Assembly: GCA_946965045.2 (NCBI GenBank)
Contig: OX337241.1
Location: forward strand, 248,001-312,000
Origin: Epithemia pelagica
Taxonomy: Eukaryota > Protista > Bacillariophyta
Direction of reading: 5' to 3'
DNA length: 64,000 nucleotides
The translations under genes and the position numbers were made by a program. Under the pieces are notes generated by a model that worked only from the letters and a program-made list of their open reading frames with translations, did no database searches and was not told where the DNA came from. Below, piece by piece: positions 20,742-28,276 of this stretch (position 1 is its first letter; the number at the start of each line of letters is the position of its first letter).

Positions 20742-22433
20742 CTACGACAAATCCCCATTGGCATCTCCACTACTTGGTGGAGCGACGGACGGTGTTGATG
20801 ATGACGGCGACAAGTTCCCCATGGCGTCTTGTTCTTGCAAGGACGGTGGTGCTTCTAAATGAACTTCCTTGAGAATCCCAATGCCTCGCACATGCCCCTC
20901 ACGTAAAATGACTCGCATTCCTTTCCGAATGTATTGTGGTCCTTGCAAAAAGGAAAAGACGGCACGTGCTCGTTGTCCAGGTCGCAACACGGTAGGTTGT
21001 GTTTTGGAGGCATCACGCGCCATGGCACGTCGTGTGGTGGTGGTTTCTGTAGTAGTAGAAGCTACCGCTGCGGCACCCGTGGCGTTGACATGAAGAATTT
21101 GAAAGTCTTCCAATCGGCACGTTTGTTTCAAATGCAAGATATGCATGGTCGTTTGGGTTTGTCCTCGCACCATGGTGACAGCGTCGCCCTTGGCCAAACA
21201 AATCTCGGCCGTAAAGGCTACAGCCGGTGGCGTCAAGGGTTCCTTTTGCATGACCATACCCTTTCGGGACAAGAGTCGTCGTTGTGGTTTGGTCAAGGCC
21301 ACGGCAAAGCAGGCGGCATGACCGGCCCAGACACGATCGACCAAGGTTTGGGCGACATGAATGGATTTGGCGACCGTTTTCATAAAGGTGGCATCTTTGA
21401 GGGGTCCAATATACAAGGTATCGCCCTTGTTGGCATGACCGGCATTGACAAAGCCCGACAAGACGGTTCCGACACCCGTCACATTGAAAATTTCTTCAAT
21501 CAAAAATTCAAACGGACGATCGTGCTTTTTGGAATGGATCCGACGTTTGGGTACCGTCCACAACAATTGTCGGACCAACTCCAATCCATTGCCCGTGACA
21601 CAGGAACATTCCAAAATGGGTGCCACGGCATGCGTCTTGTCACGTACCACGGACAAATCGTCGGTACTCCGTACGGCAAAGGGTTTTTTGCCAATATCCG
21701 GTGCTCTCAATGCTTGAGCAATGCGTTGTCGAGAATGCTTCAACACATTGGGTGGTGCCGCATCGACTTTGGTAATGACGACAATGACTGGAATACCACA
21801 CATGTGACAGAGGGACAAATGATGGACCGTCATGTAGGTTAAACCCTGAGAGGCATTGACCAAGACCAGGGCATAGTCGGCCATGCCTCGCGACAATCCA
21901 GCAATGGTGGTTTTGAAATACTTTTCGTGTCCAGCCAAATCGATCAAACTCACAGTTCGTGATTGGGCTTGTTTGGCCACATAGCGTTCGGCATAACGAC
22001 CAACACTCTTTGGAGGAATCACAGTTTGGCCGTGTTTGTCGTAGGCCAACAAGTGACTGGTAATTGTACTGGTCCGTCCGGATTCAACCTCATGCTTGAA
22101 CTTCGATACAAGCAAACGATTGGATCCATTGCCATCGTCTAGTTTGGAATGACACAAGGTCCCAATCAAGGTGGATTTACCGGCATCGACATTACCCACA
22201 ACGGCTACTCGTAAATGAAGATTGGACAAGAGTTCCAAAATATGACTCTGAGGATCCTCGTCCGTCGACGGTAACGACGAGGAAAGGAGACTTGTTGTTG
22301 TATTCAAGCTTGCCTTGTCCTCGGGTTCCTTCATCAGGTCGTCGGACGATGAGGAATGGGCCTCCTTCTTTTCAACCTCCTTCGCCACCACCATCTCTTC
22401 TTGTGGCTGTGGTGATGATGCGTGAGGCGACAT
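20742..22433 (-). CDS. GTPBP2: GTP-binding protein 1/2 family translational GTPase (563 aa)
   Basis: RVAVVGNVDAGKSTL (G1), KHEVESGRTSTI (G2), LIDLAGHEKYFKTT (G3), VITKVD (G4), followed by EF-Tu-like beta-barrel domains II/III. Confidence 0.92.
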   Translation of the reverse strand: MSPHASSPQPQEEMVVAKEVEKKEAHSSSSDDLMKEPEDKASLNTTTSLLSSSLPSTDEDPQSHILELLSNLHLRVAVVGNVDAGKSTLIGTLCHSKLDDGNGSNRLLVSKFKHEVESGRTSTITSHLLAYDKHGQTVIPPKSVGRYAERYVAKQAQSRTVSLIDLAGHEKYFKTTIAGLSRGMADYALVLVNASQGLTYMTVHHLSLCHMCGIPVIVVITKVDAAPPNVLKHSRQRIAQALRAPDIGKKPFAVRSTDDLSVVRDKTHAVAPILECSCVTGNGLELVRQLLWTVPKRRIHSKKHDRPFEFLIEEIFNVTGVGTVLSGFVNAGHANKGDTLYIGPLKDATFMKTVAKSIHVAQTLVDRVWAGHAACFAVALTKPQRRLLSRKGMVMQKEPLTPPAVAFTAEICLAKGDAVTMVRGQTQTTMHILHLKQTCRLEDFQILHVNATGAAAVASTTTETTTTRRAMARDASKTQPTVLRPGQRARAVFSFLQGPQYIRKGMRVILREGHVRGIGILKEVHLEAPPSLQEQDAMGNLSPSSSTPSVAPPSSGDANGDLS

Positions 22434-23403
22434 GAGAGAGAAAAAGAATGAGTTGGCTTCTCTCTTTCGGACTTGGGTCTTTGACGTTGAGGTGCAAACA
22501 ATCGGAAGAATGTGATTGCTTCTTGATGTATACGGTTGTCTTGAAAGTTTAGTTCTGCAGTAGTAGGTGATGCCTTGGAGCTTCTGCTAATAACAGGACC
22601 GATTCGGAGGAGTATGATAATAAGGATAATAACCTTGGTTCTAACTGCCTTGGTCGTAATAATCGGTGTTCTGCGTCGTAGTCGTTAATGATCGTAGTGT
22701 TCGTTGTGTTGTTGTTCCAAAAGATCTCGTCCATTGCCATGCACCGGTCGAGAGGAGGGAAAAAAGAGGCTTTTTTCTTCTTCTTCTTCTAGCTCCAACA
22801 GGGGACGCCAAAAGCAAAACCGTATAGAGCAATAATAAGAATTCGATCCACAAACAGAGAGTATCAATCTCTCTCTCTCGATAACAGTAGCAAGAACAAC
22901 AACAACCAGACTGGAGACTTGAGAGAGAGTTCCAGAACAGCAAAACAAAAGGGGATTGATTCAAAACAGCAACGTCCCAAAAGGAATGCTTGCAAGCACA
23001 GAATCGTTCCAAAGATGAAAACAAGGAGGGGGGTCTTTCAAAACACCAAACAGATATGTGATGTCTCGTCGTTCTGCTTCTTTTGCCGACAAAGATCGCT
23101 GTCGATGGATCTTTTTTTGGCATCGGTCTCGTCTACTTTTTACATCATAGTGGTTTTCTGCCAAACTGATTGGACTGAGATGGCGCCGCACCCGGATTGC
23201 GGGTGGGGATGTAAGGAGCTATGATGGAAGGAGACGTTCGTGAATCGTCGCTTATTTCATAGTTATGCTACATCTAACAACCACCACAGAAATCTCTCGA
23301 CGCTATAAACTTTTCAGTATGTAAAAAATATGGAGTATAGAGTCCATGCATATTACGAGAGAGGTTTACGACTACGGTTCTCCTAGATTGTGGGATTGTT
23401 TGA

Positions 23404-24731
23404 TTAGGCGACGACGGAAGGAGCAGTCATGGCCACGGGCAAGACTTCGCCACTGGCCAAATCCAAGGGAAAGTTGTGAGCGTTACGTTCGTGCATGACT
23501 TCCATACCCAAATCGGCGCGGTTGATAATGTCGGCCCAGGTGTTGATGACACGGCCCTGAGAGTCAATCACGGCTTGGTTAAAGTTGAATCCGTTCAAGT
23601 TAAAGGCCATGGTCGAGACACCCATGGCAGTCAACCAGATACCAATCACGGGCCAGGCGGCCAAGAAAAAGTGCAAGGCACGCGAGTTGTTGAAAGACGC
23701 GTATTGGAAGATGAGACGACCAAAGTATCCGTGGGCGGCGACAATGTTGTAGGTTTCTTCTTCTTGACCAAACTTGTAACCGTAGTTGGTGGATTCACTT
23801 TCGGTGGTTTCACGAATCAAGGAGGAAGTCACCAAGGAACCATGCATGGCAGAAAAGAGGGATCCACCAAAGACACCAGCAACACCAGCCATGTGGAAGG
23901 GGTGCATCAAAATGTTGTGTTCGGCTTGAAACACCAACATAAAGTTAAAGGTTCCGGAGATACCAAGGGGCATACCATCGGAGAAGGATCCTTGTCCAAT
24001 GGGGTAGTTGAGGAAGACAGCAGTGGCTGCAGCAACAGGGGCCGAAAAGGCGGTAAAGATCCAAGGGCGCATACCCAAACGGTAGGAAAGTTCCCATTCA
24101 CGGCCCATGTAGGCGGCCACACCAGTCAAAAAGTGCAAGACAATCAATTGGTATTCACCACCATTGTACAACCATTCATCCACCGAAGCAGCTTCCCAGA
24201 TGGGGTACAAGTGCATACCGATGGCGTTGGAAGAGGGGACAACGGCACCCGAAATAATGTTGTTACCATACAACAAGGATCCAGCAACGGGTTCACGGAT
24301 TCCATCAATATCGACTGTGGTAAATCAACAATGTTAGTGGACTCATTTCTCTTGTGGTTATCATTTTTTAGTCAAGGAGCGCACATACCGGGAGGAGCAG
24401 CGATAAAGGCGGTGATGAAGCAAGTGGTGGCGGCGAGCAAGGTGGGGAACATGAGGGTTCCAAACCATCCAATGTAGAGGCGGTTTTCGGTACTGGTGAT
24501 CCAGTTGGAAAACTTTTCCCAGACAGTGGCAGTGTTGCGCTTGGCGACAGCGTTCGTGTCCAAAGAGGCAGCCTTCAATTGGAAATCGGTCTCGGCCTCC
24601 ACATTGGTAGGAACAAAGGCAACGGCCGAAGACGAGGAAGTACGGGCGTTGGTGTTCAAAGGAGCAGGTGCGGTGAAAGCATTGGCTTGAGAAGCCAAAA
24701 GAGTGGCAACAATGGCAGTGGCGAACTTCAT
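23404..24731 (-). CDS. psbA: Nucleus-encoded photosystem II reaction-centre protein D1 with bipartite plastid-targeting presequence; exons 24389-24731 and 23404-24314, 417 aa
   Basis: Spliced product is a 57-aa presequence plus a 360-aa D1. With offset 57, residues D61, E65, H118, Y161, D170, E189, H190, H198, H215, H252, S264, H272, H332, E333, H337, D342 and A344 are all in register. Presequence [22 protein letters not shown]. Intron GTATGT...CACTAAC...CACAG. Confidence 0.98.
24315..24388 (-). other. 74-nt phase-1 spliceosomal intron in psbA
   Basis: 5' GTATGT, branch point CACTAAC, 3' CACAG. Removal restores [14 protein letters not shown] (codon G|TC); the unspliced frame hits a stop. Confidence 0.96.
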
Positions 24732-24763
24732 TTTTCTCTTGTTTTGGAAGATGAACTCGAAAT

Positions 24764-24853
24764 TGTGAGAACGGACAGTTCAGGACCGTCCCTGCATTTT
24801 GAAGAGAGGGGAACCCAACTATACTCTGACTCTGATGAGGAACACGTACGTGT
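24764..24853 (-). promoter_or_regulatory. Candidate psbA core promoter: TCACA initiator-like motif and ACACGTACGTGT palindrome
   Basis: TCACA on the minus strand at 24764-24768, 33 nt upstream of the ATG. Perfect 12-bp palindrome with two ACGT cores at 24842-24853. Function is inferred. Confidence 0.3.
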
Positions 24854-25432
24854 CGAGAATGAAGAACCTGCCCTGTGTCTTTGACAAGCATCCGTCGAAT
24901 CCTTGCCTTTGCAAACCGTGTTGCTAAGATACCAGCCAGCTGTCCATTCGACACAATTAGATTCTTTGCCAGTAGCATTACTAGCAAGTCGACCAGGACT
25001 GCTTGCGAGGCATTTGGCCTTTCTGTCGCAAAAATGAGCTGTTTGATCCATCAGCAAACGACCACGCAAAAATTGTATCTGCCGAAATAGGTAGAAGGAA
25101 GCCACATCAATTCCCAACACTGGGTCAGATCCTTCTTTCGATTCGACAGCTCAGATGTGTGTACCCTACTAGCCCTCTACAAATATACCATGCATGGGTA
25201 AACATTCATACATTCATCCCACCCATGTTCACAGTGCCATAGGAAGCGACGAAAGATTCCAAGTCAGATTGACAGACTGATGCCCTTTCTTCGTCGTGTC
25301 TTTATTACAGATGCGCTTATCAGTACAATAGCATCTATTGCGCATCTTTTCTGTGCGACTGAATCTCGCGATTCGGAAGCATCTTCCGCGAATTCCAGTC
25401 GCTTTTCATAAACGACCGTCACTCGTTATTCG

Positions 25433-28276
25433 TTACACACTGTCGAGTCCTTGGCGTTGACTCTCTCGGTGTCGTGCTTCTGCGTCGTCATCGTCATCTT
25501 CGTCAAAACTATCCTGAGAGTCCTCCAAATCATAATCCGGCCAACGAGTCGTCACGGACAGGAGCGAATCTTGTCGTTGCGGAGTCAAAGTTTCTGGTCG
25601 TCGTCGTTCTGGTGAACCACTACTAGGTTCCTGCAAATCGGAAAAGGTTTGATAAATGCGTTCTTGTTGAATCGCCCAAAAGGATGAAAAGGATGACAAT
25701 GGATACGCTAGCAAATGATCTTGTGAATCGTCCGATCGCGACGTGACCAACGTGGTCGCAGTCGACGACCGCACTGTTCCAGAAGAAGAGGGACGCACAT
25801 GTCGTTGTGGCCGTCGTGGTCGAGGTGACGATCGCGGTGGCGAAGACCGTGATCGCTGTAGTAAAGGAGAAGACGAGGAAGGTCGCTGTCGACGACCCAT
25901 GGTTCGTTGCTGAGATGATGATGAGGGACGGAACGGCCATTCTGGCACGTCTCCTTCATGTTGCGGTAAGGCGTCGCTCGAGGATGCGCGGAGCCGTTGG
26001 GCATACCAGGCTCGAGAAAGGCGTTGTGTCGTGCTGCTAGGAGTAGCATCCGTGGCGCTGTTGCTGTTAGAGTTGCTGTCATTGTTGGTTCGATGAGTTG
26101 TACGAATGTTGTGGCGTGAGGATGGAGCATGTGGAACTCGTGGAAGTGGCCGTATCGGTCTCTGCAGTTGCGAATTTTGTTGTTGTTGGGCCAGTATTTG
26201 TCCCACAATATGAGCAAAAGACCCAGAAGACGAGTCATCATCATCATTGCCCCCCTCCTCATCGTCATCGTGGTCTTCACTCATGGTGCTGTCATTGTCC
26301 AGAGGACTCGTCGTGGTGAAAGGATTGCGACGAGCCTGTGGTTTGAACATTTCTACCCGACGTCGACATACAGGACAGGTCAATTGATCTCGTTCACAAT
26401 GACATGCCCACTCCTCCCAACATGTCGTATCAAATACATGACCACAGGGAAGTAGCTTCAACGGAAGACCATCCGAGCCGACCATTCTCCCTACTTGATG
26501 ATGTTTATGCTTGGACAACAATGGCAGTGTTTCACCGCGGCCACTTCTATATTGAAAGCTTTCCAAACAAATGGGACAACAGGTTGCCTTGAATTTCCCT
26601 TGAAGGGCCCGTCCAGCATGAATCAAATCCCATTGGTTTTGTACCATGCGGAGCCACCGCTTGGTATCGTCACACCATGTGTGACATTCGCGGCAAGTGA
26701 TGGTACCAAGACTGGCCACAACACAGCACTGAAAACACCAGGCGACCGCTACCGCAATGGCGGCCAACCATCCCAAGGAAATCCACCACCAATTCTTTTT
26801 GTTTTTCGTAGTATTACTTGTAGGATTGGTCGATGCCTCGTCGCCGTCCTCCCGATTGTTGTCGTCTGTTTCTGAATCGGATAGTACTTCTTGCTCGTCG
26901 TCCTCACTATCCGCTTCATCCGTAGACACGGATCTTTGGCCCTTGGATTGGGTTCCATTGTTGCTCACGAGAAGATGCTCTTGACCATTTTCAATCTCAT
27001 GCACCTCCTCCAACCCAACTTCAGGAGCAGCGTTTGGTTCCTTGGAATGTACTCCAGCGTCCTGTGCTGTCAGATGATTTGGTGTCGACGACGACATTGT
27101 TGGTTGTCCATTCTGGGTTTTATCTTTCTCCAAACTCTGTCCCACCAAAATGGAATTTGGGTCGCTGGTTGTTGTTGCGGACGACGATTCCTTGGGTTGA
27201 GCTTCCAAAAACCACTGGACTGTTTCTTGAATGGCTCGGACCACCTCGCCCTGTTGCATCAACGTCGTCAACGAGTATTTGAGCGTGATCCACCCGCTAC
27301 TGTCGTCGTCGTCATTGGGGGATCTCGGAGGAAGAGGGTGGAGGGGATTCACCGAAATGGTACGCCGGACCGTTGGAGAATGAACATAGATAAAGGCTTG
27401 TTGGTCCGTTGGAGAAATGACCAATAGATCGAAGGACGAGGGTTTGACCTCGGTGGTAAAAAAGCGATAGAGTAGACCCGTAAACGTTCCAATGTCACAA
27501 CGGTCTCGGTCGCAATCCACTCCGAACCACTGTGTGATCCAAATGAGGCGACCACACAAGCATCATGAGGGTGACTGTCCATGAGCAACCACAGTGACAC
27601 AATCGGTACAACACAAACATATCTTACGTACCACGTAAGGTAAGGCGTTTTGTTTGTGCACAGACCGTTCGGGAGGCAAAATCACCACCACCACCATTGG
27701 GGCCGTAGTAGTATTCGTTGTAGAATCCGGCGCCAGATTGCGAATGGTTTGACGTTCCATGGCGGTCAATGTGGCACTGGGATCGCACAGGGTGACCAGC
27801 TCCTCGTGACGACTCGCGTTATTATTATTATTATTGTTGTTGTTGGTATCGTCCAGGAACCGACGACCGCATTCCTCAAACGGCGTCAACCATTGGCGTT
27901 CTCGTTCTTGATGGATTCGGTGCGCAACCGACAAGTGAGCCGATACGGTACCACTGGTATCATACGGACCGTCGTTCCAATGGTCGGACAAATGGTAGTG
28001 CGAATCATGGTACGACGAATGGTACGAGCCATGGTTGGACGAATGATCATACGAATCATGGTACGACAAATGATGGTAGGAAGAATGACTCCGGGATGCG
28101 ACACCGGCCTGTCGCTGGGAGACCAATGCCGTCGCAAACGTAAACAGAGAACTAGGAATCAGCACAACAATCACGGTCACGGCCACCAGGAGGTACCAGG
28201 GAAGACGACCGAAAAAAAAAGAAGAAGAAGAAGAACCACCACCACGACTCCATCCTGGTTGCCCGGTTGTCCTCAT
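25433..28276 (-). CDS. TPM/MOLO1-like domain, transmembrane helix and RING finger protein; intron 27530-27631
   Basis: Donor GTACGT at 27631 and acceptor CACAG at 27530 join two ORFs in frame. Hydrophobic N-terminus, ECGRR..LCDPSATLT and DLLVISPTDQQAFI (TPM-like), TM segment WWWISLGWLAAIAVAVAW, RING CPIC...CGHVFDTTC...CPVC. Confidence 0.75.

Follow-up and report, generated by a model that had tools for sequence, protein, structure and literature searches.

A nuclear psbA gene, probably encoding a plastid-targeted photosystem II D1 protein, in Epithemia pelagica and other raphid pennate diatoms

Can a core subunit of the photosystem II (PSII) reaction center be encoded in the nucleus? The psbA gene, which encodes the D1 protein, is the standard example for both arguments about the retention of organelle genomes, namely redox control through co-location for redox regulation (CoRR) and the non-importability of hydrophobic proteins, and the textbook view is that D1 is always chloroplast-encoded. 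The question is raised by a stretch of 64,000 nucleotides (nt) from the diatom Epithemia pelagica (contig OX337241.1 of assembly GCA_946965045.2, positions 248,001 to 312,000), referred to here as the window, which contains a complete psbA gene on its minus strand. An earlier note, made from the letters of the window, had proposed a functional endosymbiotic gene transfer. The nuclear D1 gene is confirmed as real, and we consider it probable that it stems from one ancient transfer of plastid psbA in a raphid pennate ancestor, and that its product joins PSII alongside the plastid-encoded copy.

The gene has two exons, 24731..24389 and 24314..23404, and the joined coding sequence of 1254 nt translates into 417 amino acids and a stop codon (23404..23406), with no other stops and no frameshifts. 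Two minus-strand open reading frames listed by a program, 24731..24372 and 24276..23404, are the pieces joined across the intron. This intron (24388..24315) is of the spliceosomal kind, lies in phase 1, and has 74 nt, GT..AG ends, and a CTAAC branch-like site. The spliced reading frame described in the earlier note, a 57-residue presequence followed by a complete D1, is correct in both its coordinates and its gene model. D1 residue numbers given below are the position in the nuclear protein minus 57. The base composition across the locus shows no break, and a tblastn search of the window found no further psbA copies.

Is the encoded protein a genuine D1? Exon 2 matches the Pfam family Photo_RC (PF00124) with an E-value of 4e-75; profile positions 1–29 correspond to the end of exon 1. 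Against D1 in the PSII structure of Chaetoceros gracilis (6JLU_A), exon 2 aligns over 300 residues with no gap. Based on the translation, the alignment with plastid D1, and the profile match, the part of exon 1 that follows the presequence (24389..24560, D1 residues ~1–57) comprises a diverged N-terminal tail and then helix A, ending in ..AAPP. Mature residues 58–344, with helices B–E, are encoded by 23455..24314, and this segment carries all residues of the Mn4CaO5 cluster, TyrZ, P680, pheophytin, non-heme iron, and QB sites.

All 24 cofactor and ligand residues checked by alignment are present in the window protein. These are the Mn4CaO5 ligands D170, E189, H332, E333, H337, D342, and A344; TyrZ (Y161) with H190; the P680 ligand H198, the ChlZ ligand H118, and E130 at the pheophytin; the iron ligands H215 and H272; H252, F255, and S264 of the QB site; and D61, E65, Q165, E244, Y246, N298, and R334. 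This bears out the earlier claim that the cluster, TyrZ–H190, chlorophyll, iron, and QB-site residues are intact. The same 24 residues are kept in 38 of the 39 nuclear-type D1 sequences compared. Beyond A344, a C-terminal extension of 16 residues (23407..23454) follows a CtpA-type processing site, ..LDLA/SGE.., of which ..LDLA/S is kept in all nuclear-type sequences. The plastid D1 of C. gracilis (6JLU chain A) has the same fold and mature length, all the cofactor ligands, and likewise a 16-residue C-terminal extension. Judged by these residues, the window gene is predicted to encode a standard D1 of the water-oxidizing type. The rogue or ChlF-type D1 paralogues of cyanobacteria lack the Mn-cluster ligands. 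They resemble the window protein in being divergent members of the D1 family, but the window protein retains all these ligands, and a rogue or ChlF-type reading was therefore rejected.

How would such a protein reach the plastid? The first 18 residues (24678..24731) form a signal peptide for the endoplasmic reticulum (ER), with MK and a hydrophobic core ending in ..ANA (mean Kyte–Doolittle value of the h-region, 2.26). It is followed by a transit-peptide-like region and N-terminal extension (residues 19–57; 24561..24677) that begins with the Phe at +1 of an ASAFAP-type motif and contains a second conserved motif, ..AxF(V/A)P. Residues 19–40 contain 32% Ser and Thr and no Asp or Glu. Judged by inspection and hydropathy, the junction ..ANA/FTAP follows the pattern of diatom stromal proteins. 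The whole is predicted to be a bipartite plastid-targeting presequence with an ASAFAP-type motif. The signal peptide also bears on the translation site, which the earlier note had placed in the cytosol; it implies the ER rather than free cytosolic ribosomes.

The presequence, signal peptide included, is homologous across the nuclear D1 family. M1, A18, F19, and F38 are invariant in 22 of 22 sequences, and T20, L36, P40, and L58 are nearly invariant among them. This homology argues for a single fusion event. Relative to plastid D1, some 45 residues are added between the likely cleavage site of the signal peptide and the native N-terminal tail, which is still traceable (LERR-type against VAKR/LEKK-type). 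The window gene thus differs from the plastid psbA of diatoms in being nuclear and intron-bearing, in its nuclear codons, and in its 57-residue bipartite presequence and extension.

Nuclear assemblies often contain pieces of plastid DNA, and the locus might be a contaminant, a chimera made in assembly, or a piece of plastid DNA that was inserted recently and has no function (NUPT). We give this explanation hardly any credence, because the conserved targeting presequence is joined to a gene that is only 76% identical to plastid psbA at the nucleotide level. Its GC content at third codon positions is 0.61, compared with 0.52–0.57 in the other nuclear copies and 0.25 in diatom plastid psbA. The ratio of nonsynonymous to synonymous substitution rates (dN/dS), calculated by the Nei–Gojobori method over 332 gap-free core codons, is 0.014–0.016 between the window gene and the copies of Epithemia clementina (dS ~1.0–1.07), 0.046 against Nitzschia inconspicua, and 0.064 against Seminavis; between two E. 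clementina paralogues it is 0.056. A ratio near 1, which the earlier note had named as evidence against function, was not found in any of these comparisons, and constraint of this degree rules out a pseudogene.

Further evidence comes from four public read runs compared over positions 21800–26800 of the window: X1, X3, and X4, from the same organism, and X8, a poly(A)-selected aquatic metatranscriptome. X1 and X4 are DNA-like, with even depth and contigs that run continuously through the psbA intron. One DNA unitig (22417–23446) ties the 3′ end of psbA to the downstream spacer, and another (24450–25957) ties exon 1 to the upstream RING-finger gene. The chimeric assembly that the earlier note had considered as a possible flaw is thus opposed by unitigs that link both gene ends to unique flanks and cross the intron, in runs that may derive from the assembly's own sample. 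X3 behaves like RNA; its depth is 361 on the D1 gene, 4 on the neighboring GTPase gene, and 0 in the intergenic bin 23136–23302. An X3 contig of 1166 nt (depth 361) skips exactly 24315–24388 and reaches 23359, which supplies the spliced transcript that the earlier note had called for. The gene appears to be highly expressed in this run. Two contigs of X8 match the gene with one mismatch each; one of them spans 23343–23570 and extends 61 nt into the 3′ untranslated region (UTR). This contig and the X3 contig define the minimum extent of the 3′ UTR, 23343..23403.

The locus therefore combines a spliceosomal intron spliced out of the RNA, nuclear neighbors, nuclear codon usage, and spliced and poly(A) RNA, all of which are traits of a nuclear gene, and orthologues are present in three other nuclear assemblies. 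A NUPT or plastid-derived pseudogene was rejected, since neither near-identity to plastid psbA, nor plastid composition, nor neutral decay was found.

Two side observations concern the same reads. A second X3 contig (905 nt, depth 372; 24600–25504) starts inside D1 exon 1, crosses the entire upstream spacer, and enters the 3′ end of the RING gene; possible causes are read-through, UTRs that overlap, or a join made in assembly. At 23400 and 23404, directly after the stop codon, the DNA runs show two foreign 3′ flanks that differ from each other, and unitigs also end at variant sites within the coding sequence. These branching flanks and breaks fit the presence of at least two further paralogues.

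Has the nuclear gene replaced the plastid one? Plastid psbA is reported from every diatom plastome surveyed, including those of N. inconspicua and Pseudo-nitzschia (PMC12412971). In run X4, depth rises to ~12,180 in the bin 23804–23970, compared with ~170 nearby (~70-fold), and this bin holds the 60 nt that are most similar (90%) to plastid psbA. The spike is probably the high-copy plastid psbA of the same cells. A replacement, with the plastid psbA lost or reduced to a pseudogene in this organism, would draw on the fact that the plastid gene of E. pelagica is inferred rather than directly read. However, the spike falls exactly on the most plastid-like bin, and N. inconspicua and Pseudo-nitzschia have the nuclear gene together with psbA in their plastomes (PMC12412971). 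We regard replacement as quite improbable.

Where did the nuclear gene come from? A maximum-likelihood tree was built from 26 nuclear-type D1 sequences together with 54 from plastids or cyanobacteria. In it, the nuclear-type sequences form one clade (ultrafast bootstrap, UFBoot, 100; Shimodaira–Hasegawa-like approximate likelihood ratio test, SH-aLRT, 99) with a stem of 0.087. This clade lies inside a group with 87/90 support that also contains the Proboscia plastid D1 and the P0128 cluster, which are plastid-type D1s of 360 residues. P0128 itself lies on a plastid contig with the gene order rpl27-secA-rpl34-cbbX-ccs1-psbA-psb28-groEL-dnaK. The sister of the nuclear clade among the diatom plastid D1s is poorly supported (11/0), which leaves the donor lineage no more closely defined. 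The tree points to a single old transfer of psbA from plastid to nucleus. It also upholds the endosymbiotic gene transfer proposed in the earlier note, with a diatom plastid, not a cyanobacterium or the diazoplast, as the donor.

One might imagine that the gene was gained horizontally, its source being a cyanobacterium, a cyanophage, or the diazoplast of Epithemia, since Epithemia hosts a cyanobacterial endosymbiont and psbA is known to move on cyanophages. Such a gain is highly improbable, because the nuclear clade falls within the diatom plastid-type D1s, well away from the cyanobacterial sequences, and the family is older than Epithemia, being common to Naviculales and Bacillariales. The loss of all photosystem genes has been reported for diazoplasts. 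A diazoplast or cyanobacterial source is thus excluded by the tree, the wide distribution, and this reported loss.

How widespread is the family? A protein search recovered ~45 D1 proteins of 403–457 residues, all of which have the same kind of N-terminal extension. Epithemia clementina has six paralogues that are 96–98% identical over the exon-2 query, N. inconspicua has two copies, on contigs of 3.5 and 4.2 Mb and annotated as psbA, and the Seminavis robusta member is annotated as "protein D1". Further labeled members come from Nitzschia sp. RCC80, Pseudo-nitzschia australis, Amphora coffeiformis, Entomoneis sp., and a Bacillariaceae metagenome-assembled genome. By NCBI taxonomy, the labeled members belong to Surirellales, Naviculales, and Bacillariales, all raphid pennates. 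Full-length, presequence-bearing transcripts are present in the MMETSP data of Amphora, Nitzschia sp. RCC80, Pseudo-nitzschia australis, and Entomoneis.

The nuclear assemblies of N. inconspicua, E. clementina, and S. robusta contain intron-bearing psbA loci next to eukaryotic genes. In the 418-Mb genome of E. clementina, at least six copies lie on three contigs, all with the same two introns; two of these paralogues, P0025 and P0016 (L002:1105-2533 and L002:8001-9432), stand 5.5 kb apart on one strand. The window, E. clementina, and S. robusta share, at one homologous position, the phase-1 intron that follows ..AAPP. Its occurrence in both Epithemia and Seminavis indicates that it predates the split between Surirellales and Naviculales. 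The N. inconspicua orthologue (L001:6001-7576) has four introns, after codons 162, 240, 258, and 361, and none at the Epithemia/Seminavis position. Intron gain and loss therefore continued after the transfer.

Nested within the nuclear family is a second, fast-evolving clade, referred to as type 2 (P0282, P0283, P0284 of Amphora coffeaeformis, and P0285 of Seminavis robusta), with an SH-aLRT of 100, a stem of 0.26, and the same type of presequence. The type-2 proteins keep all 24 key residues and differ from plastid D1 at 49–59 core positions, with changes such as P162S, I163M, M172L, F186L, and Y262F. Since both types occur in Seminavis and Amphora, the nuclear family has split into isoforms. 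A single change, P111E (in NGGEYQ; window 24158-24160), occurs in the type-1 copies of Epithemia, including that of the window, and is otherwise seen in the type-2 clade; it could be due to convergence or gene conversion. A long-branch nuclear-type D1 from a metagenome (P0292, 426 residues) has H252Q, N298D, and R334Q, and may be a decaying or repurposed copy.

What could the nuclear D1 do? We propose that, after the transfer, the gene would have gained its bipartite presequence and introns, adopted nuclear codon usage, and remained under strong purifying selection. Its mRNA would be translated at the chloroplast ER, the protein entering through Sec61, and the signal peptide would be cut before the invariant F19. 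The Phe-led transit peptide would then guide passage through the translocons of the periplastidal and envelope membranes. The imported D1 would be inserted into the thylakoid post-translationally, and CtpA would remove the 16-residue tail after A344. Assembled with D2 in PSII, it would provide a supply under nuclear control beside the plastid-made D1, most plausibly for the PSII repair cycle. A role in PSII is probable. For the raphid pennates as a whole, we lean towards the view that they make part of their PSII D1 from nuclear genes, importing it across four membranes, and that the family is diversifying into isoforms.

The membrane-spanning helices themselves may have adapted to this route. 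We compared 39 nuclear-type with 47 diatom-like plastid D1 sequences. Mean hydrophobicity is lower in the nuclear type for helix A (1.66 vs 1.88), helix B (0.25 vs 0.36), and helix C (1.25 vs 1.52); helix D is marginally more hydrophobic (0.81 vs 0.77), and helix E is equal. The strongest nuclear-type substitutions are C35T (39/39), A19N (38/39), I50T (32/39), V160T or V160N (39/39), T43A, and Y48F. The window D1 carries C35T, I50T, and V160N, where most family members have V160T, and its helices A–C are accordingly less hydrophobic than those of diatom plastid D1. The lowered hydrophobicity of these helices fits an easier passage through import channels. Together with the conserved N-terminal extension, it may represent the adaptation that lets a five-helix protein through the import route.

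Several points weigh against this account. The hydrophobicity contrast sets one clade against its relatives, and its p-values overstate the independence of the sequences. Import, thylakoid insertion, CtpA processing, presence in PSII, and the repair role are predictions. Plastid D1 is inserted cotranslationally, and we know of no natural route for post-translational D1 insertion. The presence of plastid psbA in these cells is deduced from the X4 spike and from other plastomes. X3 carries no RNA label, its reading as RNA being based on the depth profile and the intron skip, and X1 and X4, if taken from the assembly's own sample, are not fully independent of it.

The gene might also be real, expressed, and conserved, with a product other than bulk PSII D1; this could be an isoform made under particular conditions or a protein that serves in assembly, in regulation, or as a sentinel. 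The specialized D1 paralogues of cyanobacteria offer a precedent for this. The repeated duplication (at least six copies in E. clementina and at least two in the present genome), the fast-evolving second clade with its many core differences from plastid D1, and the N-terminal tail, some 45 residues longer than in plastid D1, would also agree with it. Conversely, in the window protein and in 38 of the 39 type-1 relatives no Mn, TyrZ, P680, iron, or QB residue has been lost, nor has E130, the whole-core dN/dS of 0.014 fits full catalytic constraint, and expression in X3 is apparently high. We therefore consider a non-bulk product unlikely and continue to favor an imported D1 that works in PSII.

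The multiple psbA copies of cyanobacteria and the psbA of cyanophages supply or diversify D1. The nuclear diatom family is similar in being duplicated and in having split into conservative and divergent types. Unlike the nuclear diatom D1, the cyanobacterial and phage copies are translated where D1 is inserted and require no import. The nuclear psbA is a case of endosymbiotic gene transfer with a bipartite presequence, here for a subunit of the reaction-center core.

Among natural cases, the closest is Psb28 of Thalassiosira pseudonana, described as "a gene in the process of endosymbiotic transfer", with plastid and nuclear copies (PMC2950852). As for D1, a plastid copy coexists there with a nuclear copy that bears a bipartite presequence. 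However, Psb28 is a small soluble accessory factor, whereas the nuclear D1 is a five-helix reaction-center core protein whose transfer is old and family-wide. Nuclear psbA fused to a transit peptide has been engineered in Arabidopsis, tobacco, and rice, and is reported to be functional in plants (follow-up study, PMC10458752). There too, a nucleus-encoded D1 supplements the plastid supply. The engineered plant gene is artificial and recent and uses the transit peptide of a primary plastid, whereas the diatom D1 is natural, many millions of years old, has evolved sequence changes, and must cross four membranes.

Our search of the full-text literature, which did not extend to subscription-only journals, turned up no account of a psbA that is naturally nuclear, only the engineered plant lines. 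In the two Epithemia genome papers, PsbA is mentioned only as an antibody control. This agrees with the statement of the earlier note that no characterized natural example was known; the gene models themselves are already public, and the gene may have been hidden in plain sight rather than unseen.

If the proposed origin and function are correct, the nuclear D1 is a living counterexample to the rule that the genes for reaction-center core subunits cannot, or must not, lie anywhere but in the organelle. An expressed, selectively maintained nuclear D1 in three orders of the very species-rich raphid diatoms turns the debate on retention into an experiment. It can be asked whether imported D1 enters PSII, under what conditions it does so, and which sequence changes enabled its import. 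The diatom protein would also offer an evolved template for engineering crops with nucleus-supplied D1. In addition, transcript or protein measurements of D1 or psbA in these diatoms may combine the products of two genetic compartments, and the same holds for psbA reads from poly(A) metatranscriptomes.

The genes on either side of psbA in the window mark its nuclear context, and the earlier placement of the gene between ordinary eukaryotic genes is confirmed by their Pfam matches. Downstream lies a GTPase of the EF-Tu type (GTPBP-like; 20742..22433, minus strand; GTP_EFTU, E = 8.4e-27). Upstream lies a RING-finger protein gene (25433..27559, minus strand; Pfam RING families), the one joined to exon 1 by the DNA unitig described above. 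In N. inconspicua, too, psbA has neighbors that can be recognized as eukaryotic genes, namely those for a RasGEF, a MatE transporter, and a protein of the squalene cyclase type.
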